A stretch of DNA of 64,000 nt from Octopus sinensis (lineage: Eukaryota). The notes below the pieces were generated by a model. That model ran no database searches. It was not told where the DNA came from and saw nothing but the letters and a program-made list of their open reading frames with translations. Below are positions 10,560-40,800 of the stretch, piece by piece. The translations under genes were made by a program, and so were the position numbers. Positions within the stretch are counted from its first letter, which is position 1; each line of letters opens with the position of its first letter. The DNA lies in NCBI RefSeq assembly GCF_006345805.1, contig NC_043019.1, forward strand, positions 18,041,360 through 18,105,359, read 5' to 3'.

Positions 10560-10590
<31 letters not shown>

Positions 10591-10984: not shown

Positions 10985-11006
10985 TATATATATGTATATG
11001 TAAATG

Positions 11007-11044
<38 letters not shown>

Positions 11045-12886: not shown

Positions 12887-13110
12887 TACGAAAGGGTGGG
12901 GCTGAAAAGTTCCTGGCTTTAAGGTTGTCACGAAAGGCCTGGTTGGAAGCCTAATCTTCCAAGTTCTTTTAAAAGACTTAGAAAAACTGAAGGACCCCTG
13001 CAACAAGTGTGATAATCCGAGAGGGGAAGATGTTCAATGAAATCATAATTAACTGATCCTCCTGTATTTTCTCTTACCCAAAGCCAGGAATCTTTCAGCA
13101 CCCCTTTGTA
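12887..13110. mobile_element. Mariner-type MITE inserted in a SINE
   Basis: About 30-bp imperfect TIRs (TACGAAAGGGTGGGGCTGAAAAGTTCCTGGCTTT / AAAGCCAGGAATCTTTCAGCACCCCTTTGTA), TA ends, no ORF. Confidence 0.7.
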
Positions 13111-14599: not shown

Positions 14600-14782
14600 T
14601 TGTGCTTCTTCCAGCTGGTCGATTAGTTGAGCCTCAGTATCCCTCTTCCTTGCATCACCCATATTCATTTCCCGTACCATTCCAAGAAAGAACACGTTAA
14701 AAAAGACTCTCTGATGGAGAATCTTCTCCACAGAATCTTTGGTGTCTTTTAGTGCAGTCAGGTTTTCATTACTGGAACCAAC
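14600..14782 (-). CDS. ITGB1BP1: ICAP-1-like protein, exon 2 (VGSSNENL...FFNVFFLGMVREMNMGDARKRDTEAQLIDQLEEAQ)
   Basis: TTTCAG acceptor, 183 nt open, GTATGT donor. Contains the start of the PTB fold (F-x-V-x-F-L-G) and LIDQLEEAQ, similar to ICAP-1 LINYIDVAQ. Confidence 0.85.
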
Positions 14783-17505: not shown

Positions 17506-17553
17506 GACGCTTTCTTTGCTCACGTTTTGCTGCTTGGCTTTCTTCTTCGGCAT
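17506..17553 (-). CDS. ITGB1BP1: ICAP-1-like PTB-domain protein, coding exon 1 (MPKKKAKQQNVSKESV)
   Basis: ATG in AAGATG context, 16 codons, then GTGAGT donor. Phase 0, in frame with exon 2. The basic N-terminus recalls the ICAP-1 NLS. This exon is less certain than the PTB exons. Confidence 0.75.
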
Positions 17554-17724
17554 CTTTCACAAATGTAGTCGAGTTATTAGTTTTCAAAGCTTTGCCTAAT
17601 TATGAGTAGGTTATTTTTCCCTCTTTAAATAATCATCTTCCAGCAACAAATCAACAATCGACCAACAACAGATCGATCGATCGATCAACAAACTTTTGCC
17701 TTCTTTTCCAACAACAAACAATAT

Positions 17725-17734
17725 ACCGGAAGTG
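17725..17734. promoter_or_regulatory. ETS/GABP-type motif ACCGGAAGTG upstream of the ICAP-1-like gene
   Basis: Exact consensus match about 170 bp upstream of the ATG at 17553. Function is inferred. Confidence 0.45.
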
Positions 17735-18769
17735 AAGCTTTAATCTCGAACCCAAAATGCGGTCAAACAATTTAAATTCACTTTTTTTTTTTTTTTTCAA
17801 ATCTCATAATTTCATAAAAGTTGATTTAGCATACATACATATTTATTAAATATGAATACATGAAATTCAATAATAAACGAAATATATTTTTTATTATTTG
17901 TATCATTGTTGTCACTTTATTTCTAACATTAGGCGACACGAAGCCAAAAATATCTTTAGTGGAATATTTTAATCCTTTTAAAGATTAATCTTTCATTTCT
18001 GAAACTAGGTTAACACTCAATGAATTTTAAATACAAATGTTAGAGGGTAAAATATCCAATTGGATCTCCCGATTCTGCTAATGCATGACCCTTTTAGGGG
18101 TCTTAAGGGCGTTTGGCTGAAACAGTAACCCACTGGACAAAATATCCTTCGGGTGTTTGGTTACGAGGCTTTACGTTCTGAGATCAAATCACAGCAGAGT
18201 CGACTTGCCCTTTAATCCTTGCATGAGGTGGGGGCACCAGTCAGCTATTCTCTGCCTGCAAAATATGCGAGCTTCTGCCCTATATTAGAAATATTAGATA
18301 AAACTGAAACAACTGGCAGCTCAAGAAATTAGAATTGTAAAATTATAGCTTTCTGCATATATATATATATAAATTTAGATTTTTGATTTATATGGATAAT
18401 ACCATAACAAATTCTGGTGCCTTTAACTTAAGTACCAGATTCATCTGAATCTAAATGTTTGCTGAACTTGTATGTATATATATATATATATATATATACA
18501 TACATATATATAAGATTCAACGAGTTAAGACTGATAAATATATGTTTAGAGACTGAAAGTTAACAAAAAAGGAAAACAACTCAAGAGAGCTTTCTCTGAG
18601 AGTGTGTGTGTGTGTCTGTGCGTGTGTGTCTGTGCGTGTGCGTGTGTGTGTGTGTTGTTGTGTGTATGTATGCATTTGCAAGCAGTGAAGAAGAGACGGA
18701 GGAGGAGAAGGAGGAAGCGGAGTAGAGAATAAGGAGAGGGGGAGAGGGGCAGGGCCTGTATTTGCCGCG

Positions 18770-18778
18770 CGCCATTTT
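18770..18778. promoter_or_regulatory. YY1-like motif CGCCATTTT upstream of the TFIIS start codon
   Basis: Consensus-like core within a locally GC/CpG-rich patch about 240 bp upstream of ATG 19014. Confidence 0.35.
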
Positions 18779-19013
18779 CCCATCATGCAATGCTGCCTCG
18801 GTCCGCCACAAACAAATTTTCTGCTGTGAGGAGAGATCGGGCGAGTCGTGTCCAACAGACAAGTGAAGGCTTCTTCCCATTATTATTGGGCTTAACCTTT
18901 AGTGTTTATCATTTGCTGTTGGTACCTTTGCCGCCGTTTTCTCATTTGAAGTGATATAAGCGTACATTACTTATTTAGCTGTGTGTGTCTCTTGCGGGGT
19001 TGGAAAAGCCAAG

Positions 19014-19082
19014 ATGGGATGCGAAGACGAAGTATTGAAGATTGGTAAAAAACTGGAGAAGATGATATCCAGCGGGACATCG
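19014..19082 (+). CDS. TCEA1: Transcription elongation factor S-II (TFIIS), exon 1 (MGCEDEVLKIGKKLEKMISSGTS)
   Basis: CAAGATGG start, 69 nt, GTAAGT donor. Typical TFIIS N-terminus. The TCEA1/2/3 paralog label is nominal for an invertebrate. Confidence 0.92.
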
Positions 19083-19195
19083 GTAAGTGGGACGAGGACG
19101 ACGGCGGCCGGCGGCCAGCGGCGGCAGCGCGACACACGTTGATCGCGCACGCACACACATACAACAACACTAACACACACACACACACACATCTG

Positions 19196-19350
19196 GCTAG
19201 TCGTGACTAGTCGATCCTTTGTGTTTTATTTACTTTGTTTAACAAAAATTATTTATTTTGTGTTTTATTTGCTCGGTAGTCGCACGATCGACTAGTCACG
19301 ACTAGCTAGCGCGAGTGCGCGCACCGGGGCCGCTGTTCCCAAGTGCTACC
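19196..19350. mobile_element. Second, left-truncated copy of the hairpin element
   Basis: Same inner IR and related AT core. The right arm is complete but diverged (ends CTACC); the left arm stops at a (CA)n tract. Confidence 0.6.
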
Positions 19351-20083
19351 CCACCCACCTCTACAACTGTGTTGCTAAAGTTTCTCTTGCCTAAATTCTC
19401 ATCTTTCTTCGCTCTCTTCCAACTTTTGCACATTTATGAACCCAAAATTAGGGTCAGCAGCCCCAAAACTCTCTTCACCATTTTACTAATTGAGTTGTGA
19501 CTCTTTTTTTCTTTTTTGTCCGTTTGTTTATTTAAAAACAATTTTTAATAATTTTCAAAATTGTTTCTAATCAACATCTAAAGTAATTATTGTATCTCGT
19601 TTGTTGATCAGGGTTATTTATTTCGATTTCCCCTATTAATACATTTGTTAAGCCCACCCCTCCCTTTCTACCAAGCAAACAAAAAATCCTGGTTGTTTAT
19701 CTCCAGATCAGCTCAGATCGACCTGATCAAAGGCTTTCCATTTGTGACCACCTCTTCTTTACTCTTTCTTTTTAATCGGACGTAGTCCTTTTGAGACAGC
19801 ATACTTCAATTCGTGCCTGATTCAGTCTAAGTCCACCCTTGTCACGGTACGCAGCCCTAGTTTTTCATGCGATTTATCTGGAAGGATAAACTCCAGTTTA
19901 AATTAATCGAAGATGCACTGTATGATTGAAATATAAATACCCCCCCCCCCAATTCCCTGGGGGTGGAGGTGTTACAAACTAAACCCTATCCTCCCATTTT
20001 GTACTCCCGATCGCACCTTTTATCTCTTTAGTACGACCAGTAGAGCTGGCCTTATTTCCATTTTACTTTTACTTTTGATGCTG

Positions 20084-20256
20084 GGTATTACTCGAGAACA
20101 GTGGTCCCGGTGCGCGCACTCGCGTTAGCTAGTCGTGACTAGTCGATCCTTTGTTTAAAAAATTATTTACTTTGCTAGCTGGTCGTTGTACAATCGACTA
20201 GTCACGACTAGCTAGCGCGGATGCGCGCACCGTGACCACTGTTCTCGAGTAGTACC
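20084..20256. mobile_element. MITE-like hairpin element in TFIIS intron 1
   Basis: About 60-bp inverted arms GGTATTACTCGAGAACAGTGG...CTAGTCGTGACTAGTCGAT around an AT-rich core. No clear TSD. Confidence 0.65.
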
Positions 20257-20403
20257 TTGATGTTGTTTATTGCCAACAGCTTGGTCAGTGTTTCGTTGGT
20301 CGAATCCAGAGAAATCTCTCCGTTTCCACCGTTTCTCCTTGCTTTCTCATCTTCCTTCCTTGCTTTCTCTCTCTCTCATCGCCATGCGAGCAATAGAGCT
20401 TAT

Positions 20404-20417
20404 ACCGGAAGTGACGT
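20404..20417. promoter_or_regulatory. ETS-CRE-like composite ACCGGAAGTGACGT in TFIIS intron 1
   Basis: ETS core overlapping TGACGT. Shares the TATACCGGAAGTGA context with the 17725 site. Confidence 0.35.
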
Positions 20418-21708
20418 AGCTAATGTTTAGATTCCACCCAACAACACCCGCCATAAATCTCCCTCATCCAACATCACAAATACAAATTGGAGCTGATCGA
20501 TGGATCTCTTCTTTGCACTGGTTTTTATAGTTGTTATTCGATAACTATTGATTGGGGTCTCACGTCAGTGTTGATAGAGCAACCCTATGGTCAAAAGACG
20601 TTCCTGTCGAGACCACCACGTCTTTTATTCACAGTATATACCTAAGACTAGAAATGTCCGATATGATGGTAAAAAGAGAGAGAGAGAGGCGGAGATTGAT
20701 AAGTTTATAAGTAAATTAATCATCTGGTCTTTAATAAACAGAGAAAGAGGATGAAAAAATAGCAAATACAATGTTTAGTTTACGAGTTGAATAATTTCGT
20801 TTTTCTAATAAACTTGCACGACTGAAATATTGGCTGTCCAGTTTGGATTCGGTGCAGGACGAGTTGAAACGCTCTTTCATTCACTTGTGCCATATTTGAT
20901 GCCAACAAGAACTTCGGTTTAGACGTAGAAAGTTCTTCTTTTCAGCTTCGTTTGTGGTGGTGCCGTTAACGCTCATCGTTTGGGTTGTTTGCGGGTGCCT
21001 GGAAGTAGCAGACCAGACCCCCCCCTTTTTTTTTTTTTTTTTTTCAAGTAGAGTTCCGCACTTTTGAACACCAAGATAGAAGTGGCTGTTTATATGTCAC
21101 ACAAGCTGTTTAATTCTATAAATAGCTTAATTGTGGCCGTCGCAACACCTAACAAGTAAGGGTGACGATATGAAGTGAATTTCGAGTGCCTTAGGTCAGT
21201 TACAGTAAGGGTGGCGCTTCTCTGTGTGTTCATCGAAGCTAGAATAGTTGTGGCAGTAGTAGAAGTGGCTGGGAACACGGCGTGACCCTCTGTTGGTTGT
21301 CCATAGCAGATTGCTGATTAAACCATTGCTAATCGTCCCGGTTGAGTTTATTTCTTCCGGTCGGTGTCGCAAAAATATTTCGGTAAGGTCTATTGCGAAA
21401 CAACTAGAAAAAACATTCTATGGTTTGAAAGAATCAAAAGTGTGCGTGCAAAGGGAAAATGTTTACGTTATTCGTCATTTGTCTAATAAAACCCTCCAAT
21501 ATCACCCCGTAGTCTATATATCTCGTGATTGTATTTTGTCAGTTTCTTCCTTTAAAACCAAACGAAAACCTATCAAATTTGCTATCTTTTCTCTGAACGT
21601 TACTTTTTCATCACAAGCAACATATGCCATTATTTTAATGTGTGCAGGTTTTCAAATACTGCTCTATTTTTTTTTTAGCAATATGCGAGTGTTTATCGCT
21701 CTCTCTAC

Positions 21709-21776
<68 letters not shown>

Positions 21777-24152
21777 GGTTATTCAAATGGTGTCCTTTAC
21801 TGGTTACTGCATAAGTATGTTGAACTTTTGTTATTCATCAAACGAGACGATTATCACCTTACTTGGAAACATGGGTTTAGCGACAAAGAGGATATCTGGC
21901 TGTAGAAAACCTACCTCGACAAATTCCATCTGACCCATGCAAGCATGAAAAGGTGGACGTTAAAACGATACGAGTATTAAGTGGTTTAGCACAAGCAATC
22001 TTGTGTGCCTGATGATAGTTTGTGTTTGTATAAAGAATTGTATTTGTTTGGCCAAATGATGTTATCTGGGCTTGAGTTAACTAAGACAATAATTGTATTG
22101 AGGGTCATAATGGAATTAAAGGCACACAAACATCAGAATGTTCTCCACTAGGAAGTATACCATAAAGTTGAAAAAAATGAATACAAAAGAACATGTGTTT
22201 TTGATGGCTACAATGACTCTACCAAGGAGCAGTGGCTTGCATATCATCATCATCGTTTTAACGTTCACTTTCCCATGCTTGCATGGGTCAGAGAATTTGT
22301 TGAGGCAGATTTCATTTAGCTGGAAGCTCTTCCTGTTGCCAACCCTCATTTGTTTCCAAGGCATAGTTTTCACAGGAGACTGGAAACAAAGGCTATCTTG
22401 TTGATCAACATTTACAAGGGCCACATTAAGACACCTGTGTCTGTTCCTCTGGCCTAATGTAGCCTCTCAATGGAGGGTCTTTTCTCTTGCAAGTTACTTA
22501 CCAAGCTCACTGATATTCATGTTACAAAAACCACCTGGTACTCAGTACTCTCTGTAAAGAGGTTGGTGTTGGGAGGGGCATCCAGCTATAGAAACCCTGC
22601 CAAAACAGACATTTGAGCTTGATGCAATGTCCTCGCTTGTTGGATCCTGTCAAATTGTTAAACCCATGTCAGCATGGAAGAATGTCATTGAGGTATGTGT
22701 ATATGTATACTTGACAAACTTCCTCCAGTTTTCCCCTACCAAATCCCCTCATAAGGTTTTGGTTGACCCAGGGTTGTAGAAAGCTCTTGCCCATGGTGCC
22801 ACACAGTGGAATTGAACCCAGAGCCATGTGGTTGGGAAGTACATGTTTTAAATCACACAGCATGGGCACACACTCATGCATTCTTGCTTCCCTCGATTTG
22901 TAATTTGTGATTTTCTTTCCTCTAACAGTTCTCGGCTTATTAATTCTGACAATTTCTTTGAGCTCCTCTGTTTCTTTCTAATTCACTCATAAGAATCACT
23001 CAACCGTAAACATTAACAGTTCCGCTCTCAGGAAATTATTGAAATTGTAACATGTTGTAGACTCGTTTACCCTGGAATTCATTACACTTATTATGAACAG
23101 TTATATCCTGCACGTTGTCTCTCATAAGGTACCACCAGCAACACTATGTCTGTGTTGTTGTTTAGCCTTCACTGAATCAGTGTTCAAAGACATTCCAACT
23201 GGGGTCAGTTTTTTTTTTTTTTTTTTGCCTTTTCAGTAAAGGACTAGACTACTCAGTGCATCTTTCCTTTTCATTTTCAAAAACATTATGATGCAATTCA
23301 AGAGAGATCTGGCTGCTATTTCTATCACATTGAGCAACCATGTAACATCTTGTCTCAGCCTTGCTATAGCAAACTACGATCAACGGTGTTCTTATTATCC
23401 CATCTATTCAGGCACAGTGTACCTAGCAATATACCGTCTTCTTTTACTTGTTCAGACATTGGACTGCAGCCATGCTGGTGCAGTTGAACAAATTGCCCCT
23501 GCACATCACATCTCATTATATTGTAATGAACGGTAGAATTTGTCGAAGATTGACCCAAAAGTCTTTTACAAAAACAAAACAAAAAAACCTATTTGGTTGG
23601 TCATATGTGGGTTCATGCTCAACAGTCTTTTCTTTTGTTTTCTAACCTCATCTCCAGTTTGACATAGCAGACAGATCTATGATCTAAGACACTCCAGTAG
23701 TGACCTCCATCTTTTTTTACCCTGTAGAGTCCTCAGGGTCTGCAATACTGATGATGTCATCAGAATTGGTCATGGAATATCTCTAGGTTTTTAGATTTTG
23801 ACGCATGAAATTGTAGGTTTATAAACCGTTGAGCACAACAAGGCAGCAGACATCCTGGTCCTTTGCCGTCTTGCCTGAAAGTTTCAGCATCCTGAGGTCG
23901 TCCTTCAGTACTTCATCCTGATCAATGACCTCAGCATCCTGAGGTCATTAAGTTTTTAAAAATCCTTTTATATTTTTATTGTTAAATATTCGGAATTGTA
24001 TAAGAATAATTGTTAAAATGTTTTGTGTATTGTAGAAATGTACCCGAATTATTGCACAAAGAAAATCTTATATGGACCCCAGTTGAGAATGACTGACTTA
24101 ACCCAACATAGCATAGACAAACAGGCATAAAAATTAACTCTATATATATGTA

Positions 24153-24197
<45 letters not shown>

Positions 24198-24201
<4 letters not shown>

Positions 24202-24363
24202 CCACTACACTCACGGAGTGGTTGGCGTTAGGAAGGGCATCCAGCTGTAGTAACATTGCCAGATAAGACTGGAGCCTGGTGCAGCCTTCTGGCTTCCCAG
24301 ATCCCCGGTCGAACCGTCCAACCCATGCTAGCATGGAGAACGGACGTTAAATGATGATGATGA
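24198..24363 (+). mobile_element. Short RTE 3'-tail copy (representative of many: ~12321, 14213, 22245, 25370, 39455, 46060, 57721)
   Basis: GGAAGGGCATCCAGCTGTAG...CCAACCCATGCTAGCATGG...GGACGTTAAATGATGATG, shared with the LINE tail at 54139. Confidence 0.85.
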
Positions 24364-24364
24364 T

Positions 24365-25068
24365 ATATATATATAAAACTGAGAATGTCTGTCTGTGTGT
24401 TTCCCTAAAACTTGAGAACTATCCAACCAATTTCATTCAAATTTTACACATGCCTTACTTAGGATCCATGTAGTTTCATGGGCAAAAAAAAAATGTTCAA
24501 CTTCTTGCCTAGAGTGAGCCCATAGCAATATCATATCTTCACTATTTCAGTATTACGTGTTAAAAGTGAAACAAAAACGTTTCTCTATTTTATGTCAGAT
24601 ACTTTCACTTTAACAATAAAAATAATAATAACAATTGAATTATATGTAGTAAGTAATAATTAAAATCAAACTAAAGTATAATATAATCGTAACATAACAA
24701 AAGTAAAAATAGCAATTGGTATAAAATTGCATCAATGACTTGAAGTGGTTTCACATGAATGGGAATAAAATAAAAATAAAATTAGCGTGCAGAAATGGAA
24801 TAGTCCAGATGGATAATAAAAAATTAAAGAAAAGAAAAGACTATTGTCTATAAAGTATACAATGTAGAGAAAAAAGAAGAGCTAACAATTCCAGTCTGTT
24901 ATATAGTTTGAGTATTGTTATCACTAGCGATATCAAGATATAACTTTGTATTTTGCATTTTATGTGTAGATGTATATATATAGATGTACATGTAATATGT
25001 ACACATATATATACACATATATACATGCACTAGCACTATGACCTGGCAACGACGGGTCTTTAATGCTA

Positions 25069-25069
<1 letters not shown>
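24365..25069 (+). mobile_element. Non-autonomous Helitron-like element
   Basis: TATATATAAAACTGAGAATGTCTGTCTG 5' region (TC not visible). GACCTG-GCAACGA-CGGGTC hairpin, then CTAG|T. Confidence 0.7.
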
Positions 25070-25106
<37 letters not shown>

Positions 25107-25615
25107 GTACACACAGCCATGTGTATAGCTATAACAACCTAAACTTGTGTGGAAATTGTCTTTGCTGCTCCTCGTTTGAAATTGTCTGACAAGAATTATG
25201 TTGTCATATTCACATTTCGAGTGGACATCACATCTGACAGCTCTGCATTGGGAAAATGGCAAACTTTTTTCTTTTTTTTCTTTTTGTTACCAGCTTCAAT
25301 TATTTTGTTTTGTTCTTCATTTCTGTAGTTATACCCACACACATACATTTTACCTTTCTCTAAAATCTTCATCATCATCATCGTTTAACATCCATTTTCC
25401 ATGCTGGAATGGGTTGGACAGTTTGGGGACTAGCAAGCCAGGAGGCCGCAGCAGGCTGCAAACCATGGAAGTAAGAGCCCTCTTGATAAAAATTAGGGAG
25501 CCTGATGCATTGAGCAATTTATCTAACAAGAAGGATGATTTGTATTAGATGTGCTTGTTTCTGTTTATTGTTGTTGGCATCAGGCTGATCAATCATTGCT
25601 CTCTTGTTCCAACAG

Positions 25616-25684
25616 GACCATGCTGCTTCAGTTGACCTCCTCAAATCCTTACAGGATTTACCTATGACTCTTGATGTGCTCCAG
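25616..25684 (+). CDS. TCEA1: TFIIS exon 2 (DHAASVDLLKSLQDLPMTLDVLQ)
   Basis: AACAG acceptor and GTGAGT donor, 69 nt. DLL..L..LPMTLDVLQ motif of TFIIS domain I. Confidence 0.92.
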
Positions 25685-26012
25685 GTGAGTCTCTTTCATT
25701 CCATTCACTAGACCAGCCTCTTTCGGTGTGTGTTTTTGTAGCCTATGTGGTTGAAAGTTTGTTTCACAATCAAATGGTTTTGGGTTCAGTCCCACTCCAT
25801 AGCACTGGGGCCAGGCTAACCAATGACTTGAGTGTGAAATAGGGTTGATAAAACCCTAACCCGAAGCCCATGCTTTGTATATTTCTCATCGTCTTTGTTC
25901 TTTTCACATTTACTTTTCTATGCTGGCAGAGTTGTCCATCCTGTTGCCAACCATTGGTGATGAATGGCATTCATTTACAACTGTCACTTCATGTAAAGGC
26001 AAAGACACATGC

Positions 26013-26045
<33 letters not shown>

Positions 26046-28819
26046 TTGGCCTTCTTTTAGTTTTCATCTACTAAATTCGCTTTAGTCAGCCGAGGACTGT
26101 TGTAGAAGATACTTGGCAAAGGTGTCACACAGCCATGTCTGATACATGCACACGTGTGTGTGTGTGTGTGTGTGTGCGTGTGTGCATCACTTTACATCAA
26201 GAGATAACTGTTTGGTAAATAGAGATTGATGGGTAACAATTTGAAATAAACACTGGAGTTGGTCATGATAGATTGAAACTTTTTATGATGGTGCCCCAGC
26301 AAGGCCACGGTTGACTGATCGAATGAATAAAAGAATGTCTGGAAATGGTCGACACTATAATGTGTGGTTGGGAAGGAGTGGTTAGCATGCCCCTCTCCTT
26401 AGCTAAGCTCCCTTTCTGTCACCACTACCATCCTCTAAAGATGCAGTTCTACTTTCACAGAACTTTGTGCTGGGATTCAACAAAATCCAAACCATTTTAG
26501 ATACAGACTGTCTGGCCGAATAGTTCTTGACCATTTTAATACCCAAGTCAGGTCCCAAGCTAGGATTTTTGTAGGGGTTTACTCACCAGAAAAGTAAAAA
26601 CACAAGTCATTTAAAGGGAAAATTATTGTACCTACAGAGGGAAGATGGTTTGTGAGCTTGATTGATCTAGTCATTAGTCTAGAAATAAACAATCATTGAA
26701 ATCTCAAAGCTATGAGATAATGCAGGATTAATTCAAGACGATATAAATGAATACACATCAGATTTGACGGATTAACATGGATGCTAAAAGGTTTAGATAT
26801 TTAATCTGCATATGGGGAATGCAACATAGGTGCCATATAAAGCGAACATCACGTGATAAATCCCCAAAAGATATTGTCTCACAAATTGTGGACTACAGAT
26901 TCGTCCTCCTCCGCATCATCATCACATGCCCACTTTTCCATGCTGGCATGGGCCAGATGGAATTTGTTGAGGCAGATTTTCCACAGCCGAATACCAGTCC
27001 TGTTACCAACCCTCACCTATTTCCAAATAAGGTAATGTTTCCACATGGCCAGACATGTTTCATATCTAAGAATGGGAACAAACATCACTTGTAATGGCTG
27101 TGATGCTCATTTAGAATCATCTCACCAAGTCAAGACAAGGCCATACGCACACACACACACACCATGGGCTTCTTTCAGTTTCTCAGAAAACATGATAAAA
27201 AAAAAAGGTTGAAGCTGTCTTTTTCCCACCTGACTGTCACGCTGCTACCATCTATTTAGGATATTGCCAATCTCGATCACCAGATCCTGGGTTCAATCCC
27301 CAGGCTGAGCAGCATGTTGTGTTCTTGAGCAAAACGCTCCATTTCACACCACTCCAGTGTTGTGGGGGGACCAGCATGTCAAAAGAATAAACCCAGCATT
27401 TCCTCTGTGTTGTAAAAGACTAGAGAGAGCGGTTCAGGCTGGACTTGTACTCTGACCCTCACCAGCCACAGCAGACGGACCAATAGGTCGGAGGGTTGTC
27501 ACTGCCATGATTAGTAAGGAATCAACGACAAATGGTGGATGCAGCTGTTACAGCACATGCGATTGCTACAATATATCTTTGGTGCTTCGACAATTACAGC
27601 TCAGCTGGTCTAAAGAAAGGGAATTTGGCAGATTCATTCAAATGGCATCAACTAAAAAACAATTGAACTAATTTGTTTTCCTGTGAAAGTTTGGAAATGC
27701 AAACCATGGAAAATATCTTATTTAACAAAATAATTGACTGGTAACGTTTATCGTCACCTCAACATGGCTGTTCCATAGCGATTTTCTAACTGGCTGATTG
27801 GCTTGTTGCAAAAATTGATCGTTTCATGAGGAAAAAAAAAAAAAACAGGATATAAACTGAGACAAATGGATTGTAGGATGTAGCGCTATAACAAAAGCAA
27901 CTGGCACTCAAACAAGGGTTTTGTTAAAGTCTTTGAGTAATCACTACAATCTGGCTGGTTTTATGTAAATTTGGGTTGTTCTTGCTTTTGGATAGACTTT
28001 GCAACATATTTACATACACAAATTAAATTTGGAATAATTTTCTTGTGACAAACTCTGAATTGCAGAAAGAACAGTTGGCACATTTTACCAATCTTGAACT
28101 TTGATTATCAGACTGATGAAAAAAAGAAGAATTTTTTTTTTTATCTCAACCAATATAAGCTGAAGATAAACTGGTATTTGTCATCATAGGAATTGTTAAA
28201 GAACTCAGCTGTCCAACAAATTACTTTTGACATTTCCCTGATTTTGAGAAATGATTTTTCAAGAATCTGAGCTGCATTTTGAAGTTGACATCCACATTGA
28301 TATTCAGAAATCATCTTTGCTTCTTGTTAGAATCTCTGAAATTCTAATAAGCTACAGAGAGGATTTCTTTTCATCAGATTTGAAAAGGAAAAAATAATTA
28401 TTGGCTACAAAATTTATTGACAGTTAATTAAAAGCCAACAGGATTTCTGGCAGTTGATAAAAGTTTATTTAAAATCACTTCAGATCCTCACTTAAAAGTT
28501 GCAATTTGAAGGAATTATGGTGAAGTTGTGCTGCTACTATGTATTAGAATATGCTGCCTCAAGTTCTATTGTTTTTGGATGTAGCTTTCTTGAACGGGTC
28601 AGCACGAAAACTATAGATTGCAACACATTTGATCCAGGAATGTGGATTCAATTATCCAGAATTAATGTCTTTTTGCTTTTTTTATAAGTAAATTCTTTCT
28701 GTTAAACAGTTTTTGTTTCGTTTAATATCTTAAAATATGGCATGGGCTCTGTAGGCATCGAGAAAGCTATTGTACTGCAAATTATCAAGAGATATTCACT
28801 GCTGCCCATCATTTTCCAG

Positions 28820-28946
28820 AAAACCAGAATTGGAATGACGGTAAATAACTTCCGTAAGTCCAGTAATGCGGATGAGGTGATCAGTCTGTCGAAGGCGTTG
28901 ATTAAGAGTTGGAAGAAACTCTTGCCAGGAGAAAGCACAAATTCCA
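28820..28946 (+). CDS. TCEA1: TFIIS exon 3 (KTRIGMTVNNFRKSSNADEVISLSKALIKSWKKLLPGESTNS)
   Basis: TTCCAG acceptor and GTGAGT donor, 127 nt, phase 1. TRIGM.VN and WKKLL motifs. Confidence 0.95.
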
Positions 28947-29088
28947 GTGAGTAACGGCATTTCCCTCTGTTCTGGTTGTTGTTGTTGTTGTTGGTGTCAT
29001 GCTGTTGCCTTGTTAAATATGTGTTGTTTCAGAATCTCTTAAATCGTTTCTTCTTTTTTTCTTTCTCCTCTTCTTGTTTGACCTCCAG

Positions 29089-29301
29089 AATCATCATCAT
29101 CACAGTCTTCTGCTAGAAGCAACAGCGTCAACAAAACAGATGAATCTTCACGTGACAGCACGGACAGTAATTCTCATGATGTGAGCAAGAAACTGGAAGG
29201 CGATGCCAAAGGGGGCCAGTCTGGCACTAAACTAACTGACACAAGTGACCCTATACGTCTCAAATGCCGGGAGCTTCTCTTCAATGCTTTAAAAGTAGAC
29301 A
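29089..29301 (+). CDS. TCEA1: TFIIS exon 4 (Ser-rich linker to TSDPIRLKCRELLFNALKVD)
   Basis: CTCCAG acceptor and GTGAGT donor, 213 nt, phase 1-1. D.IRLKCRELL marks the start of domain II. Confidence 0.92.
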
Positions 29302-29844
29302 GTGAGTGGCGTTTGGCTGTTCTTTCTGCTTTGTTCTCTCACTCACGGGTGTGGCTGTGTGCTTAAGAAGCTTGCTTCCCAGCCATGTGTTCTCAGGTTC
29401 TGTCCCACTACGCTTCCCAATGTCAACCGCTTTACAGAACGTACTGAATGCTTTTAATGAGGTACCAGCACAGGTGTTTTATATGTGGCTCCAGCATGGG
29501 TGCTTTTCTGTGCACCAACGCAGGTACTTTCTTCATGACACTGAAACGAATGCTTTTGACATAGCCCCCAGCATTCACAAACTGGCTGACGGGGGAGGGG
29601 GATGTGTGTGAGTATTGTAGGTGTGAAACTTCAATGTTATTATTGACTCCTGCTCAAGTTTTTCTCCGCAAATAGTCTTCAGGTAAAGATTGTAACTCAG
29701 TGTAGTAGAAAATTCGTTATATTGAATTATTCAATTTAAATTATAAAGACAAACTCTTGTTGATCTAATTGGCAAGCTTTCTCTCACCTTTCACAGACAA
29801 TGTTCTCCAGTCTATTCTGTTGAGGCTACAATAAATTTCTGCTA

Positions 29845-30055
29845 AGGCGGCAAGCTAGCAGAAACGTTAGCATGCCGCGCGAAATGCATAGCGGCATTTC
29901 ATCTGTCTATACATTCTGAGTTCAAATTCCTCCATGGTCAACTTTGCCTTTCATCCTTTTGGGGTCAATTAAATAAGTACCAGTTACGCTCTGGGGTCGA
30001 TGTAATCGACTTAAACCCTTTGTCTATCCTTGTTTAGCCCCCTGTGGGCAATAAA
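29845..30055 (+). mobile_element. SINE family 2
   Basis: GAGTTCAAATT...GTCAACTTTGCCTTTCATCCTTT.GGGGTC...AAATAAGTACCAG. Related copies at ~180-330 (-), ~15380-15560 (-) and ~50425-50590 (+). Confidence 0.75.
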
Positions 30056-30094
30056 TAAATTCCTGCTACACTAATTGCTAAACTTTATTTTCAG

Positions 30095-30148
30095 ATCCCC
30101 CTCCTGGTGTCAAACCAATGCCACAAATTGCTTCAGAAATTGAAGATT
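30095..30148 (+). CDS. TCEA1: TFIIS exon 5 (PPPGVKPMPQIASEIED)
   Basis: TTTCAG acceptor. The exon ends at a U12-type 5' splice site, ATATCCTTT. Read-through hits TAG, so splicing is required here. Confidence 0.88.
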
Positions 30149-30250
30149 ATATCCTTTAGACGTACCATTTCTTAAATGAAATTGGTGCAAGTTTCTTAAA
30201 ACTTTTTGCACTCACTCATTTGCAAATGTTCTGTGTTCTCACTCACTCAC

Positions 30251-30302
<52 letters not shown>

Positions 30303-30680
30303 TCTCCTCTCTCTCTCTCTCCTCTCTCCTCTCTCTCTCTCTCCTCTCTCTCTCTCCTCTCTCTCTCCTCCCTCTCTCTCTCTCTCCTCTCTCTCTCCTC
30401 CCTCTCTCTCTCTCTCCTCTCTCTCCCTCCTCCTCTCTCCTCTCTCTCTCTCCCTCTCTCTCTCTCTCTCCTCTCTCTCCTCTCCTCTCTCTCTCTCCTC
30501 TCTCCCTCTCTCTCTCCTCTCTCTCTCACTCCTCACTACTCTCTCTCCTCTCTCTCCTCCTCTCTCTCTCCTCTCTCTCTCCTCTCTCTCCTCTCTCTCT
30601 CTCTCCCTCTCCTCTCTCTCCTCTCTCTCCATCTCTCCTCTCTCTCCTCTCTCCCTCTCTCTCTCTCCTCTCTCTCTCTC

Positions 30681-30761
<81 letters not shown>

Positions 30762-30822
30762 CTCTCTCTCATCTTGTGTCTTTTATTACTTGATCTTCAA
30801 TGTATTTCTTAACCGAATGTAA
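30149..30822 (+). other. U12-type (minor spliceosome) intron 5 of TFIIS, AT...AA as assembled
   Basis: 5'ss ATATCCTTT at 30149-30157. Branch site TTTCTTAAC at 30805-30813. The frame-preserving acceptor is AA at 30821-30822. Confidence 0.85.
30238..30770. repeat. Degenerate (CT)n/(CCT) polypyrimidine tract
   Basis: About 530 bp that are almost purely C/T on the plus strand. Confidence 0.97.
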
Positions 30823-30977
30823 CTATCTACCAAGAATTCCGAAACACTGACATGAAGTATAAAAATCGTGTCCGAAGTCGTGTGGCCAATTTAAAGGATC
30901 CAAAGAATCCTCAATTGCGGGAAAGTGTGTTGCAGGGCATCATTGATCCCTGTCGAATGGCTGGAATGACCGCTGAG
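30823..30977 (+). CDS. TCEA1: TFIIS exon 6 ([51 protein letters not shown])
   Basis: Highly conserved domain II. GTAACA donor. The 5' boundary is set by frame (see U12 intron finding). Confidence 0.92.
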
Positions 30978-33015
30978 GTAACAACAGTATTCTTTCTAAT
31001 TCTTCACAACCGTTTCCTGTCTTATTTCTTGACTCTTTTCTAAATCCTGAGGAATCGTTTACCTTTTCCTCCTCAACAATAGGGAACCTGTTCTTCGGCA
31101 GCCTTTTTTTCTTTGTTTCTTCCATACTTTACCCTTCTCAACTCCTTTATTCTCCTAGCATACAAGTTGTCCCCTAGTGCTGATGACATTTAAAAAAAAA
31201 AGAAAAGAAAAAGAAACACCAGTACTCTCTGTGAAGTGATTGGCATTAAGAATGGTATCCATCCCTTGAAACTATGCCAGAGCAGAGAGTGGAGCCAGAT
31301 GCAATCTTTGAGCCCATCAGACCCTATCAAACCATCTCAGCATGAAACAAGGGCATTAAATGATGGTGAGAATTCCAAGAATTCTACAAGCTGGGGGACA
31401 GATTGTGGAACATGGAGCATTCTTGATATTAGACATAATTAAAGTGCTCACATTGGGATAGAAAAGAAAAACAAAGCCATTGACAGAGCTTGAACAAGAT
31501 ACTTATATTTACCTGTGTGTGCATTGCACCCCTAATATGCTGTTAAATCTTGCTGCAAAATATTTTTTTCCTCTCATAGTTTTAGTTTTGCTCTGTTTAT
31601 AACCCCCCCCCCCGTTTTTTTCTGAATTAACCAACTATAAGATAATACAACTCCTACACAAGTAAATACTATATCTTCATCTGGCTGTGCAATCACGATA
31701 CTGATTAGACAACAGAACACTTGCTCTTCCAGATGTGTGTAGGATACTTTAGCTGTACAATTTTCTCTGTCACTTCGTTCTACCCGAATAGGTTATTTCT
31801 TCTACTGCCCATCATATTTGCTGTCCTATCTCATTTCTGTATCTGCATTGAAAATAACCTCCATCTTAGCTGTGAATTGCATAACAATCAAGTTCTGAAA
31901 TTGGATACTGTATGTTGTGGAGTCTGAATTGATATATTCTGATGACATATCCTGATACGATCTTCAGTTTTGCTAAAAAGACAACAGCTGAAAGCTGTTT
32001 TTGTAATCAGATCTGCTTGGTCAGGTTTGAACAGAAGCTAATCTACAACATGGTATTGAAACAATATATGACCATTCCAAAGACAAATGTGGGTTTCTTC
32101 CAAGAAACACAACAGAAGACTGGTGGATGATCCCAAAGTCTAACCGAAAATCAAGTATGAATTTTAACCTGAAAGAAAAAGCTTGTAAAAAAATTTGTTC
32201 TAATTTTGGGTGTGAAGAGGATTATGGATTATGTTTGAGAAAGATGAAAGATTTTGAAGTTTATTATCCATCCTAATTAATTAAGAAAAAAATTAATTGA
32301 AACTTTGTTGTAAATTCAAATAATTATTTTGTGGGTCTTAAATTTGAATTGTTAGCAGTTGGATGGCTCTGGTATGAAGTGGTCAAATTTTGACTTCCTC
32401 AGCGGAAGAAAAGCAGTGCTTCGGGCATTACAAGGCCTCTCTGATTGAGAGGTGGGGTGAGAGAGGAGAAAGATAAAACCAGGACTTCTGGAATATCTGC
32501 AGACTGGAAGCAACAGAGTGGAGAGTGATCAAAGCACACCTGTGCACTTTCAAATAGCCAAGTGGTGGTGTTATTGCTAAGGGTGCATTAAGTACAACGC
32601 TGTGTTTACAATTCAAACATGAGAAGAGTTCTGCTAATGGTGCATTTCCAAGTTGTTGCTTCTATCTGTAGAAATGTTACTTGATGCGATGCTCAATGGT
32701 TGAAGGGGAATAAACGTCTCGACAATAACTCGGAGCCTTTTACCTGAATTCTCAGGTCAGCTCACTCAATGCAGCACTGTGCACTTTGCCTGGCTCTCAG
32801 GGGAGTCAGTGCTGAAGCTTTGGACAATGTTTACCTGTGGTGGACAGACATCCAGTTCCATGGATATAAATTATGCCTCATCCTCTAAATTCTATACGAA
32901 TCACAGACGTTTTTTTCTTCTCTCTTTCTCATTTGTTTCATTCCATTCAGCAGGGAAAACCAGTCCTTTATATTAAGTTTACAACTCTAACTCAGTATAA
33001 ATGTTTCTTGTGCAG

Positions 33016-33162
33016 GAGATGGCCAGTGACGCTATGAAGTTATTGCGGAGCAAATTAACAAAAGAAGCCATTAATGAACATCAGATGGCTCAGACAACTG
33101 GAAGTGTCACTGATCTCATTAAATGTGGCAAGTGTAAGAAGACAAACTGTACATACAACCAG
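33016..33162 (+). CDS. TCEA1: TFIIS exon 7 (EMASDAMK...[13 protein letters not shown])
   Basis: TGCAG acceptor and GTATGT donor, 147 nt. EMAS motif and the first CxxC of the zinc ribbon. Confidence 0.95.
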
Positions 33163-34483
33163 GTATGTCAGATTTCTCTGCATTCATTTATGCCATAAAA
33201 CTTGTCTTTCATCATTGTTACTTGTTGGAATATTTCTCTATTTTATTTCCCATTTCCTTATGGACTTCCACCTTCCATCCTCTTTTCATGTTTGTACCAA
33301 ACAGGTTATGTCCCTTCGTGTTCTGAGTTCAAATCCTGTTCAAGCTAAACTTGCCTAGCATCTTTCTGGGGTCAATAAAAATATTACCAGTTTACTACTA
33401 ACACTACACTTGATATAATTACTCTTTTCCTGAAAGTGGTGCTCCAGCATGGCCATAGTCCAGTGATTGAAGCCAGTAAAAGAATTTGAACAGCCCGAAA
33501 TTTCTGATTCCCCCCTTTCATGAAGTATAACTCTCTGACAGAAAATGGAACATTACAGAGACTCTGTGTGTGTCCGTGTGTCCAGTTATAAAAAATGAAA
33601 TTTCATTTTGATGTGTTGTCGCTCTTCGAGAAGTAATACAGTGACCCACTGATTTGTCCAATAGAAACTTGTAAGTGATGGGGCTCTCATCTATCCTCGT
33701 TTGTGCCTGATTCGTTCATTGCTGATCTGTAAGATCCGGTTAATAGAAAAAAATATAAAGGCCTCTGGTCCTAACAAATGACACAAATGAGTGTATTTTC
33801 TTCAGGGATCAAGAAAACACAAGTGCTTGGAGGTAATTTATTTAAAATAGTAATAATGAAATTATTGTATACATTACTCAGGTGCCCCACAACTTGTCAA
33901 AAGTGCGTATAAAGCATATGCAGTAATGTGCAAATGTCTGGAAAGTGAACAGTGTATGAGTCAGATACATGCTTGTGTGTGTATGGAGGGGAGAAAATCA
34001 AGCGTAGTGTTGGCGAATGTCAGAAAGCATGGAAGTTTTGAAGGATGCAGTGCTCCGACAACTAACAATTGCTGTGTTTTTTTTTTCAGAACCAGGGCAG
34101 GCCCTCTCCCTCTCCTTGATAGACCAGCATTTCAACAATCAACATCTCATCTTTTTCTATTATGTTACATCCTCCAGCACTCGCTCACTATATTCATCTG
34201 TTTTCAAGGTGGTCGCCACAAATTTGAAAGGCATTTAACTGCTATATCTTGCAAATGGGGCAACTGCCTGCAGAGATTCTTATTCATTTTGTGAGTACGT
34301 GAAGAGTGTGCTTGAGTGAGTGGCTACCAACGATTGCTGCACCTCTTAACATCGTAGAAAGTTGGGGCCATGGGGAGGGGGGGTGGAATTTGATGTCAAC
34401 AAGTACATTGTTGAGTCTTTGTTTTTTGATTTATTTGTTGTCAAGCATTTCGAGTAGTTTTGTCTTTCTTATACCCCCCTCTC

Positions 34484-34537
<54 letters not shown>

Positions 34538-34550
34538 AAGCCAGTTTTGA

Positions 34551-35160
<610 letters not shown>

Positions 35161-36875
35161 TTCTTCGCCTGAAAAAAAAAGGTGGGGCTGGAGTAAGAAT
35201 AGGTGAGATATGTCTGAGTGATTATGTGGTCTGCTTCCCAACCTGAACAAGGCTATGTCTCAAATTCAATCCCTCTCTGAAGCATCTTGGACAGATTGTC
35301 ATTCTTTATGGCCTCAAGTCAACTTATTCCATTTAAGGGAAATTGGATCAGAAGAAATATGCTACCTGAGAATTAAAATAAAGGTACCTATCTGGAATAC
35401 TCAGCCAGTTACGCTTTAATTCCAGAACAAGGAATTCAGTTTATGGCACCGCTGAGTCCTAATCATCAGACAACAAATATTCCATGATGTAAACTATTCC
35501 TAATAATAAGTATATGTAGGTCCACCTCAAATGTTCAGGGATTTGTATCACCTACAAAATTTCAAGCCAAGGAAATGAAAACTGTGAGGTTGAATGAAAA
35601 TCTGCAAAGGAGAGAGAGATTCTACAAACTACAATGAAGGTAACTCCATCATGGTAGGGAGCCGGCTGTGGCCCTGAATGAAATCTACTCCAATGGAGAG
35701 GAAACAGCTTCTTTGGTGCTGGCAACATCAATAAAATGCACCAAATTCATATTGTAAAGTTGTTGTTGATAAGAAGGGTATCCAGGCAATAGAATTGTAC
35801 CAAAATCCTGATACGAAAAATAATTGTATATATACAGGACTAGCACAAAGTTGTTATTGCTGAGATGGTGGGATTATCTGGTGGTGTGTAGGAATATCTC
35901 AAACAACCGACCCGTCAGTAGAAAATTCTCTTCTTTCCATCAGGTACGAAAGTTGGGAGCCGCCACAAATGTTAGCATGATTAAAAACTAAGGATTTTAG
36001 GGGTTCTTGTGTGTGTATGAGAGACCATCTTGGAGGTTTGGGAAAACACTCCATTATAAGGACAACGATATCGTTAGTCGTCAAGAGTTATTTCCCTTCG
36101 TTTACCTCTGCCTTGGTCGAGTTTCGGCCTTAAAAGTCTGTGCAAAAATTTCTTCCTGGTTTTAGCTTTATCTTGTATTTAGGTTGCACTTTTTTTTTCT
36201 GTTGAAGTCACGTATAACATACAGTATATATGTTACGATAAAAAACACTGAAATCTGTTTGGGATTTTTAGTAAAAAAAAATATTTTTATCTTTAAAAAT
36301 GTTATTACAAACAATTAATCCCAAAATAGTTTGAAGCTTGTTGATCTCTTTTTGGACATCGAATTTGGTGGTCCAGGTTCGATTGCTAAATATCATTGCT
36401 ACTTGTATGTTTATATATACACATACTTTTTTAAATAATACCGAGTATAACTCTTCTAGGTTTGTAACAAACCATTCCTTGGTGATTCATTCTTTGTTCT
36501 GTTTTGTGAAACTATAATTCTATCTTAATGCATAAAATTGGGCCCAGAATGTGAGGACATCAGTTTGATCTCCATAAACTGCATAGTCCATCCATTCTGT
36601 TGCCAAAAGTGTCCAAATTCCTATTCACACCTCATTGGACATTCTACTTTCCATATTGTTCCATCTTCTCAGATGGCATTCATTTGCAGACAAGTCTGCT
36701 GTGACTGTTTATTCTTTTCTCGGCTCTGCTCCCCACCGACATCACACTTAGCCTCACATCTCAGCATTTTCTTTTATGCTACAGAATATCATTATTAAAG
36801 TTGATGCTTTAAATTAGTAAGAAAAAATTTTTTAATCCCATTATTAACTTGATCTGTGTTATTTTCTCTTTTCAG

Positions 36876-36884
36876 TTTTGTTGA
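36876..36884 (+). CDS. TCEA1: TFIIS terminal coding exon 9 (FC*)
   Basis: TTTTCTCTTTTCAG|TTT TGT TGA completes the canonical RWKFC* end. Total CDS 915 nt = 304 aa + stop. Confidence 0.85.
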   Translation, partial: FC

Positions 36885-37860
36885 TGTTCCAGCCATAGAA
36901 TTTTTGTTCTTTCTCTGATCAGAGACCATTGACCGCTGCCACCGCCATCGCCCACCACCACCATTATTATTATCATTAATTGTTATCATCCCTTTGCTGA
37001 AACTGGATGTCTTTAAAGAGAAGGAAGACAGAAAAGCTCTGATCAGTTAATGGTGGGATGAGTTTGTTCGTGTTTCCAGGGTTCTTAACACCAGAAAGCA
37101 ACCGGAGAACTTGACATAAAACAAATTTTTAAAAAATTGGAAGAAAAAAAAAAGAATTTTAAAAATGCACTCACTTTCCCCATCACTAAAAACATGGTGA
37201 GTTTTTAAAGAAACAAGAATTATGAAAGGATAGACCAAACTGAAGCTGGAACCTATCGTCCATCGTTTTCCACTTCCTCCTCCTCCTCCTCCTTTCTCTC
37301 TATGGCTGTTGATTTGCTGCGGATCTGACCTTTCCACTCCCACTCAGCCTTGCTCTCTCCCTTTTTCCTCCTCTTAGGGCTCTGTCTTTCTTTATCTCTT
37401 TGCCTTCCTTCTTCCTCTCTCTCTCTCCCACCCTGCTGTGTTTTTGTGTGTGTGTGTGTGTATTTATTATCTGTCTGCATTTGTTGTTGCATACATTGTA
37501 TTTTGAATCTCTGTCAACGTGTGTTTGTCGTTGCCCAACCTGAAGTATAAATTAATTTTCACAATGTGTGTCTGTGTACACACACATACACACCATTCTT
37601 CTCATAATTGCTGAATTACCCAACATGATCCATAAATATATTTATATTCTCAGTACAGACGTGTGTGTGTATGTGGCTCTGTCAACCATCCTACTACCCA
37701 TGCATGCATGGAAGACGTGTTAAACGATGGTGATGATTACATTTATATAGGGTTTCCTCTGTATAACTACTAACACATTGTTGAGATGCAAGAAGGCCTC
37801 GGTTGCTTTCACCAAAAAACTGCCATTGCTCTTGGCTTAAATTCATTCTTTAATTTTCAA

Positions 37861-37866
37861 AATAAA
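37861..37866 (+). terminator. Candidate polyadenylation signal AATAAA for TFIIS
   Basis: Hexamer about 1 kb past the stop. The real 3' end cannot be fixed from sequence alone. Confidence 0.2.
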
Positions 37867-40800
37867 TATCTTCTGAGTTCTGATAAATGATTCCCGAGAC
37901 AAGGAAACATCCAAGAAATGGGTTGGAGAAGGGTAGGGGTGTCATCCAGGTTGTAAGGGAAAGTAACGGGGTGGGGTGGGCGGGTGACATTGTTCTGGAA
38001 ATAAGGCTTTCCTCACATTTGTTTCCCTCATTTCATTGAAGTTGTCTGCACTCCCATCGTGTTCACAAGTGTTTTGGCCAATGTTTTGAGAATGTAATAA
38101 GTCCCCTGTGATGTTTGTTCTGCATCAAGTTACATGCCCTGTTGCCATCAGAAATGGTGTGAGTCCATCATTGCAGACTTGCTGTAAATGGTGCTGCTGT
38201 TCACAGTTGCAAAATGCAGAAATACTCTTCTAAAAATAAGTCTTTTGACTCTGTGGACTGTATTCACCCTTTGCCTGTCCTGTGAAAACACATCTGCTGG
38301 TATTCAGGACATATTTCCTTGGTGTCCATAAATCATACACATTGGCAACATTTTTCAACGTCCAGAGTAGCTGGGGCGGAGAGGGGGAGGGGCCTTGTGA
38401 AAGAAAACTATATTCTTCAGAACATATGAAACAAGGGCTAAGAGCCTGAAATCAAGGATAAACTTAGAGTTAACATTTGATCTGCTTTAATAGGAATCTA
38501 AACCCAGTTTATTTCTCTGCTGCTTCAATTTTTTGCAGAAGAATTCTTTGTCAATACCTGAATTTCTTGTAGTCATCCAGGTCTTTCTTTACCAATTACA
38601 GACTCTCTTTTTCCGTCAAATAATTCCAATATTTCAAGTTTATTATGCCAGGGCATCATCTCTTAGGGTATTCGAAAGATATCCTTTGTCTGCTTCAGTA
38701 CCAGATCCAGAGTAGAGCTTTGTACTCAAAGTAAACAATGATTTCTATCCAATGTATTGAGATAATGTTTCCTTTTAATATACTACTCTTAAATTATGAT
38801 ATGTATTTATATTGTATATATGTGTGTATATAATGATAGGTTATTTCTACTTTAAAACTAAATCTCTGGATATTGTTTCAGTTTGAGGCTGGGTGTTCAT
38901 TGAACCAATTGTTCACAACCACACATAAAAGCATCTCTGAAACCCGAAAGGGGAATCCTGCTTCTTTGGGATCGGTTTTATGATTTAAATCCCTTTCAAG
39001 AAAAAAGAAGACTATATATATATGATCTTCACTTCAACATCTACTTTTCCATGTTTGCGTAGGTCAGGTGGAGTTTGTTGAGGCAAATATTCCACAGCTT
39101 GATGCCTTTTCCTGATTACTTCCAAGCAAGGTGTTATGTCCCCCGTGTCCAGGAAATGTTTTCACGGAAGAATGGCAACCAGCAGCACTGCTTGATGGTG
39201 TGCCTGTTTGTTTACATCCATCATGCAATGTCAAGACTGGGGGAGAGACACACACACACACAAATATGCAAACACCATGCCAGCATGGAAGGTGGACGTT
39301 AAATGATGATCATATATATATACATACATACACACACACACGCACAATGGGCTTCTTTCGGTTTCCATCTGCTGAATCTACTTGAAAGGATTGGGTGTGA
39401 GTTGATGCCATGCAGTGGGACTGAACCTGAATCCTTGAGGTTGGGAAGTGAGATCATCATCATCGTTTAACGTCTGCTTTCCATGCTAGCATGGGTTGGA
39501 CGATTTTGACTGAGGGCTGCACCAGGCTCCAATCTTGATCTGGAATAGGTTCTACAGCTGGATGCCCTTCCTGACGCCAACCACTCCAAGAGTGTAGTGA
39601 GTGCTTTTTACACACACTCACACAATTATATGCCATGCTTATTTTGGGCTGCAGTGCTCTTGGTGAAAAGGAAAGAGGCTGAGAGAGGAACATAGAGTTT
39701 GGTGAAGGAATCTCCTCTCTCTCTCTCATTTTTGATCCATTGCTGCCAACTTGGTTGACTGGATTGCAGTTCTGTAATCTGCTGGTGAGGCTTTGCTGTG
39801 TGTTGCCCCACCCTCGACCCCTGGGCTTTGTTTTTGATCACAGCTACACACACACACACACACACTTTTTTTGCATGTCAATATGTATGTGCATTTATGC
39901 GTACGCATGCACTGGTTTTGTATACATATCTGTTGAATGTAAATCTCTGAGATAAGTTATTGTTGATGTGATTATCAGATCAAGATTAATTAATCTCGTC
40001 GTTGTTTTAGAGATGAAAGAAAAAATGTTTTGTCACTGTCGCCATTGTATAAAATCTCAGAAGACTTCCTACCAAAAATATATGTTCCAACACACACACA
40101 CACACACAATCATAGATACACGTGTCTGCAATTTTAAAATGAACTTTTTTTTTTTCCCTCTCTTTCTCTCATGCTCATTATTTAAATTTTCATCTCTCCT
40201 CCAACTCACATATTCTCTCTCTCTCTCTCCCTCCCCCGACACCGTTCCTGTCTCTGTCTCGCACAATATTACAAGCTTGTTCCCTATTTTCATTTACAGC
40301 AACATCACTGATTCTCCACTCACTTTATACAAAGTAAATGTCTTTTGTTTTATGTCCCTCCACTTTTATGTATGTCTGTGTTATATACAGGCACATAATG
40401 TGTGTATGATTGTATACATACATGTATGTGTGTATAAATGATATATATTGTATATGTATCATGGCAAAAGTGTAGAGAGAATGTGTGTGTGTGTGTGTGT
40501 ATAAATACAGACGCATTGAGACCCGTGGCCAAGTGGTTGAAGTGTTCTGCTTGTAATCGTGTCGAGTTCAATTGTTGGGCCTGGTGACCTGTTGTCCTTG
40601 AGCAACGTTCTCCATTTCCTGTTCTAGCCAGTCAACCAATGCCGGTCTCTCTCCTCAGCTGCCATATTCTCAATATACCACTGGTTCAAAAGGTATGAGA
40701 GTCGAGACTGTCTGTGTCCACCTGTGGCAACATAATATACCTTTAAAAATAGAAGCAGGGTACTTGCTTCCAGGATGCTCTCACACACAAACTCTTTCTA

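Follow-up and report, generated by a model that had tools for sequence, protein, structure and literature searches.

A probable AT–AA minor-spliceosome intron in the TFIIS gene of octopods

Does an intron of the octopus TFIIS gene truly end in AA, and is that the end at which it is spliced? The question arises in a 64,000-nucleotide stretch of the Octopus sinensis genome (the window), where the fifth intron of the gene opens with a U12-type 5' splice site and can be closed in frame at an AA, with an AC one base downstream that would shift the frame. We consider it very probable that intron 5 is an ancient U12-type intron whose termini changed from AT–AC to AT–AA in the octopod lineage, that the AA is real sequence, and that it is the site spliced.

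Intron 5 of the Octopus sinensis TFIIS gene

Exons were located by tblastn with human TCEA1, and their boundaries were then set by eye and by script (table 1). The region from 18014 to 37884 of the window is base-identical to CM016881.1:18059373-18079243 of GCA_006345805.1. Seven of the eight TFIIS introns are GT–AG, intron 5 being the exception, and splicing the latter as AT–AA completes an unbroken 304-aa TFIIS open reading frame (ORF). The product agrees at every residue with XP_029649828.1 ('transcription elongation factor A protein 1 isoform X1 [Octopus sinensis]'), a model that derives from the same assembly as the window and whose name does not carry 'LOW QUALITY PROTEIN', the tag with which RefSeq marks models needing frame correction. 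The model therefore uses the nonconsensus junction itself, with no inserted base. A second RefSeq isoform, X2 (XP_036368443.1, 281 aa), lacks exon 2 (25616–25684) and with it 23 residues of TFIIS domain I at the N terminus. An Rfam scan of the window returned zero matches.

Table 1. Features of the TFIIS gene and its intron 5 (window coordinates)
Feature	Positions	Strand	Details
TFIIS/TCEA1 coding region, O. sinensis	19014–36884	+	9 coding exons, 304 aa
Exon 5, (N)PPPGVKPMPQIASEIED plus first base T of the Ser codon	30095–30148	+	phase 1 end
Intron 5, AT...AA, minor-spliceosome type	30149–30822	+	674 nt; placed by frame and conserved one-residue spacing IE[ED]-x-I[YF]xEF
U12-type 5' splice site ATATCCTTT	30149–30157	+	perfect consensus match (/RTATCCTTT)
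Imperfect (TC)n microsatellite	30237–30770	+	~534 nt, most of intron 5; Tandem Repeats Finder: period 2, 282 copies
U12-type branch site TTTCTTAAC	30805–30813	+	one C-to-T difference from TTCCTTAAC
3' intron terminus AA, probable productive 3' splice site	30821–30822	+	frame, RefSeq identity, orthologues
AC one base downstream (last intron A plus first exon C), candidate competing 3' splice site	30822–30823	+	frame-shifting
Exon 6, (S) plus 51 residues, TFIIS central domain	30823–30977	+	exon assembly
Next AG	30833–30834	+	T+AA gives in-frame TAA at the junction
TGA in the AC-spliced frame	30853–30855	+	122 nt upstream of the exon 6/7 junction

Exon 5 terminates in ...GAA ATT GAA GAT T, and the 5' splice site follows directly after its last TFIIS-homologous codon. 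Toward the other end of the intron, the branch site is followed by CGAATGTAA^CTATCTACC (carets mark splice junctions), that is, by nine bases before exon 6, which places the second branch-site A (30812) 10 nt from the last intron base. These nine bases hold no polypyrimidine tract, and the (TC)n tract stops on the upstream side of the branch site. The single departure of the branch site from consensus would, given the U12 sequence, make a G–U pair with U12.

Ending the intron at AA joins T to CT as TCT (Ser) and restores the conserved IEDSIYQEF. In every TFIIS homologue that was read out, a single residue separates IE[ED] from I[YF]xEF, and AT...AA alone among the in-frame pairs both cuts before A1 of ATATCC and keeps one residue at the junction. 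The original prediction had described the 5' splice site, branch site, phase, and frames of this intron from the sequence; all of these statements hold, including the TCT codon and IEDSIYQEF at the AA junction, which the RefSeq-identical product bears out.

By themselves the splice motifs are neither rare nor significant in the window: RTATCCTTT is present 3 times where 1.8 are expected, and TTCTTAAC with AM after it 7 times where 2.4 are. Intron 5 is judged real because its motifs fall precisely at the points where TFIIS homology breaks off and starts again, because the seven other introns are GT–AG and the whole ORF is unbroken at 304 aa, and because the signals are conserved in orthologues. 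Further perfect 5' splice-site matches on the plus strand, at 38679–38687 and 52763–52771, lie where no ORF or homology ends; with their count within chance expectation and without coding context, they are taken as chance. A U2-type rescue of intron 5 was also rejected, there being no GT before the in-frame TAG at 30158–30160 and the next AG giving TAA. Other in-frame pairs (TA...AC, TT...AC, and more) need a non-U12 cleavage position or lose the conserved junction residue.

The orthologous intron in cephalopods and vertebrates

The orthologous intron was compared among cephalopods, as had been proposed along with the original prediction, and proved to be AT–AA in octopods and AT–AC in a non-octopod cephalopod (table 2). 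The AA^CT end is present in five of the five octopod sequences, O. sinensis included. The 5' splice site ATATCCTTT is identical in O. vulgaris, O. bimaculoides, the read-derived octopod contig, Argonauta, the non-octopod cephalopod, and human TCEA1, and the branch site is a perfect TTCCTTAAC in both Argonauta and the AT–AC cephalopod.

Table 2. Ends and lengths of the orthologous intron in cephalopods
Sequence	5' end	3' end	Intron
O. sinensis (window)	GATT^ATATCCTTTAGA	TTTCTTAACCGAATGTAA^CTATCTAC	674 nt
O. vulgaris GCA_951406725.2	as O. sinensis	as O. sinensis	322 nt
O. bimaculoides GCA_001194135.2	as O. sinensis	as O. sinensis	322 nt
Another octopod, read-derived Logan contig SRR11869390_814449	as O. 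sinensis	as O. sinensis	191 nt
Argonauta hians GCA_054771915.1	GATG^ATATCCTTTACC	TTCCTTAACCGAACGCAA^CTATCTTC	1164 nt, AT–AA
Non-octopod cephalopod contig, ENA ERZ21867824	GATG^ATATCCTTT	TTCCTTAACTGAGTTCAC^CTATTCAC	540 nt, AT–AC

In the non-octopod contig the intron ends ...TTAACTGAGTTCAC^CT, an AT–AC intron with spacing identical to that of the octopods. Across all six cephalopod sequences, nine bases separate TTAAC from the exon and 10 nt separate the second branch-site A from the last intron base, so that TGAGTTCAC^CT of the AT–AC relative and CGAATGTAA^CT of the octopods align without a gap. Given this equal 9-nt spacing, the octopod AA end is a C-to-A substitution of the terminal intron base and not a lost base. 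The bases flanking the Argonauta AA differ from those in Octopus, and it is therefore not a copied error.

Spliced RNA is available on the AT–AC side. Three RNA-seq runs of a cephalopod close to the AT–AC contig yield contigs with the spliced junction GAAGATG^CTATATAT, which places cleavage before A1 of ATATCC and starts the exon with CT in that lineage. The RefSeq models of O. bimaculoides have IEDSIYQEF (Ser) at the junction. Among the Logan and ENA contigs searched there was no spliced octopus TFIIS mRNA, and the RefSeq junction might be owed to protein homology instead of RNA-seq. Exact look-ups of the exon-6 ORF in public contigs, and of the Pomacea and Ruditapes proteins, gave no match. 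A protein search with a 163-aa fragment returned no cephalopod and no match longer than 286 aa, this search seeming to limit match length relative to the query; the full-length query brought up Octopus and Argonauta.

Human TCEA1, TCEA2, and TCEA3 are listed as having U12 AT–AC introns in the data sets of de Wolf et al. (2021, PMC8280824), which confirms, for these three genes, the vertebrate TCEA U12 intron that the original prediction had placed here. In human TCEA1 its sequence is ATTGAAGAAG^ATATCCTTT...TTCCTTAACGGCCTGGTAC^CTATAT (PMC8280824). The human and octopod introns are alike in gene family, codon position, and phase (IE[ED] G/T^CT I[YF]), and also in the 5' splice site, a TTCCTTAAC-type branch site, and an exon starting with CT; they differ in that the human AC end lies 11 nt from the second branch-site A and the octopod AA at 10 nt. 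At the homologous intron, a vertebrate genomic Logan contig reads TTCCTTAAGTCCAAAGCAC^CTATATTTC and a TARA invertebrate contig TTTCTTAACCAGAATCATAG^ATATTTTC, with an AG end, and some other invertebrate genomic fragments have no intron here. The TFIIS U12 intron thus appears, from these sequence comparisons, to go back at least as far as the ancestor that vertebrates share with cephalopods.

Intron 5 is orthologous to the AT–AC intron of the three human genes, its last base having changed from C to A in the octopod lineage to give an AT–AA ('A-type', AT–AN) intron. U11 and U6atac would recognize its 5' splice site, and U12 would pair with its branch site. In the second step, exon 5 would be joined to the C at 30823, which directly follows the AA located 10 nt from the branch adenosine, and the product would carry the Ser codon TCT in a full-length TFIIS. 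We infer that AA is the site used in vivo. A genuine AT–AA intron was one of two options originally put forward, and it gains support from the RefSeq-identical product and from the AA in five independent octopod assemblies or contigs.

The (TC)n tract makes intron 5 90% pyrimidine, with a longest unbroken pyrimidine run of 274 nt. This tract, which stops 35 nt upstream of the branch site, explains the differences in intron length among the four Octopus-type sequences (674, 322, 322, and 191 nt); the Argonauta intron has no such tract. The tract is an odd cargo for a U12 intron. A second microsatellite, (CT)28, lies at 34479–34534, some 40 nt before the acceptor of intron 7, and CT-rich microsatellites seem common in the introns of this gene. 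The intron that follows exon 6 in the contig of the non-octopod cephalopod contains ORFs with SCAN-like (555 aa) and integrase-C (90 aa) domains (12654–14705, minus strand), which probably represent a retroelement insertion enlarging that intron to about 7 kb.

The neighboring AC and other readings of the junction

The minor spliceosome could instead use both AA (30822) and AC (30823), the AC product being frameshifted into a stop and degraded by nonsense-mediated decay (NMD). Some of the TFIIS pre-mRNA, whether a fixed or a regulated share, would thereby be spliced unproductively, and TFIIS output would be tied to the state of the minor spliceosome. We regard such dual use as unlikely, although several properties of the site are in accord with it. 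Splicing at AC, with a predicted junction of GAAGATT^TATCTACC (30148>30824), is followed by 10 residues and then the TGA, and the distance of this stop from the exon 6/7 junction exceeds the 50–55 nt criterion, making the AC isoform NMD-eligible in silico. That AC would lead to TGA after about 10 codons, and the next AG to TAA, had been foreseen in the original prediction, and both frames are as described there.

The distance from the branch A to the AC is 11 nt, within the 11–13 nt optimum for the distance between branch point and 3' splice site (Turunen et al., PMC3584512), and the AA lies at 10 nt; we applied this optimum with roughly 10–20 nt tolerated. Choice of the U12 3' splice site is also error-prone and of low stringency (PMC3584512; Chang et al. 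2007, PMC1874599). The spacing optimum would favor AC at least as much as AA. Work by Dietrich and colleagues from 2001 is said to have found C the most active 3'-terminal base with A (AU) at the 5' end, which would favor AC as well. The AA may not be the sole 3' splice site in use, nor even the kinetically preferred one, and the AC one base downstream is, judging by its position, a plausible and credible competitor.

Octopus and Argonauta have both kept the AAC arrangement, a point in favor of dual use. The exon-first C, however, belongs to a GCT or TCT (xCT) codon that is conserved from vertebrates to cephalopods, AT–AC relatives included. AAC follows simply from having the terminal A next to the first base of the exon, the C of this conserved codon, and its conservation therefore needs no regulatory explanation. 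Also against dual use, RefSeq isoforms X1 and X2 are both in frame, and no others are listed. Its stronger form, in which a hard-wired acceptor pair has sent a substantial share of TFIIS pre-mRNA to NMD since before the Octopus–Argonauta split, is in our estimation more doubtful still. If AC is used, the intron would let the spacing rule and the terminal-nucleotide rule for choosing U12 3' splice sites be set against each other in a natural setting; if the acceptor pair is true, TFIIS dosage depends on the fidelity with which the minor spliceosome selects the 3' splice site, and the locus is a natural single-nucleotide competition assay for 3'-end choice by the U12 spliceosome.

It is highly improbable that both cleavages fall one base downstream, giving an intron from 30150 to 30823 (TA...AC) and a Tyr at the junction (IEDYIYQEF). 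This arrangement is in frame, leaves one junction residue, and provides an AC end, but it requires 5' cleavage after A1 of the invariant AUAUCC, and the mRNA junction of the AT–AC cephalopod, G^CT, corresponds to cleavage before A1. The RefSeq models of two Octopus species likewise give Ser and not Tyr. The two readings predict different cDNA at the junction, GATTCTATC for Ser (AT–AA) and GATTATATC for Tyr (TA...AC).

Coleoid cephalopods edit their RNA heavily by ADAR, and A-to-I editing of the terminal A would turn AA into AI, read as AG, making the intron functionally AT–AG. The general prevalence of such editing is the one point in favor of this route, to which we give very little credence: the 3' splice-site region (211 nt, 30770–30980) folds no better than shuffled sequence (z = 0.06), and AT–AA introns of mammals and plants are spliced without editing of this kind (PMC1557818, PMC10639083).

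The other option originally put forward, that the true sequence is ...GTAACCTATC (AT–AC) and that the O. sinensis assembly dropped one C (AACCT to AACT), has in its favor the rarity of AT–AA and nothing else, and we reject it as next to impossible, since four other independent octopod assemblies or read-derived contigs share AA^CT, an added C would introduce a length difference from the AT–AC relative with its equal nine bases after TTAAC, and the RefSeq protein carries no frame-correction flag.

Annotation of the intron and comparison with known minor introns

The AT–AA intron is modeled correctly by RefSeq and wrongly in the deposited annotation of O. vulgaris, which splits TFIIS into two genes at intron 5. 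The O. vulgaris locus, OX597836.1:50281668-50299101 (recovered-locus positions 10001–27434), corresponds to the TFIIS coding region of the window. Its first annotated product (180 aa, ...IEDYIL, stop) reads through the U12 5' splice site to TAG, and the second (CAI9739788.1, 117 aa) starts at the Met of MKYKNR. This split is an annotation error caused by the AT–AA intron. On the 5' side of TFIIS in O. vulgaris lies an ITGB1BP1-like gene with ICAP-1/PID domains (minus strand, recovered-locus positions 1–8382); by synteny this gene is expected on the minus strand within the window's first ~17 kb. Two O. bimaculoides proteins, XP_014769991.1 and XP_052831953.1 (locus CM046623.1), continue after ...CTYNQV into intron-like sequence (…LSPPVLSSYPIQAKLA and …CWNFYALIDAIKLVF…) and have no C-terminal zinc ribbon, the last TFIIS exons of this species being either mis-modeled or missing or broken in the assembly.

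Intron 5 therefore matters chiefly for annotation and as a comparative data point. It defeats some gene-prediction pipelines, and recognition of AT–AA ends keeps the models of an essential transcription factor from being split or truncated. For comparative purposes, it is a U12 intron as old as the bilaterians in which a switch from AT–AC to AT–AA can be dated to the octopod stem and has been stable.

Were both acceptors used, the nearest parallel would be U11-48K and U11/U12-65K, which are autoregulated through USSE-driven unproductive splicing (AS-NMD; PMC3584512). The likeness would lie in an alternative choice of 3' splice site that yields a degraded isoform. These genes have a conserved enhancer element and demonstrated isoforms, and for octopod TFIIS the dinucleotide itself is what is shown.

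As an intron spliced at AA, octopod TFIIS has closer counterparts. A-type (AT–AN) minor introns, with which it shares its termini, depend on CENATAC and as a class are spliced less efficiently, with more intron retention (de Wolf et al. 2021, PMC8280824). AT–AA is the commonest noncanonical type of minor intron in animals and plants according to a survey that took in O. sinensis (Larue and Roy 2023, PMC10639083), and Sheth et al. (2006, PMC1557818) counted three such introns in human, four in mouse, and one in Arabidopsis. Of the documented examples, RASGRP4, FLJ21106, and MSH3 resemble octopod TFIIS in having a U12-type intron that begins with AT and ends with AA. The AT–AA introns of RASGRP4 and FLJ21106 are conserved between human and mouse, and that of MSH3 is AT–AA in human and AT–AC in mouse (PMC1557818), a precedent for a change between AT–AC and AT–AA among lineages. 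AT–AA minor introns are thus already described, and octopod TFIIS adds a further case, differing from the documented ones in gene and clade, in a switch that is fixed across Octopoda, and in a frame-breaking AC one base downstream.
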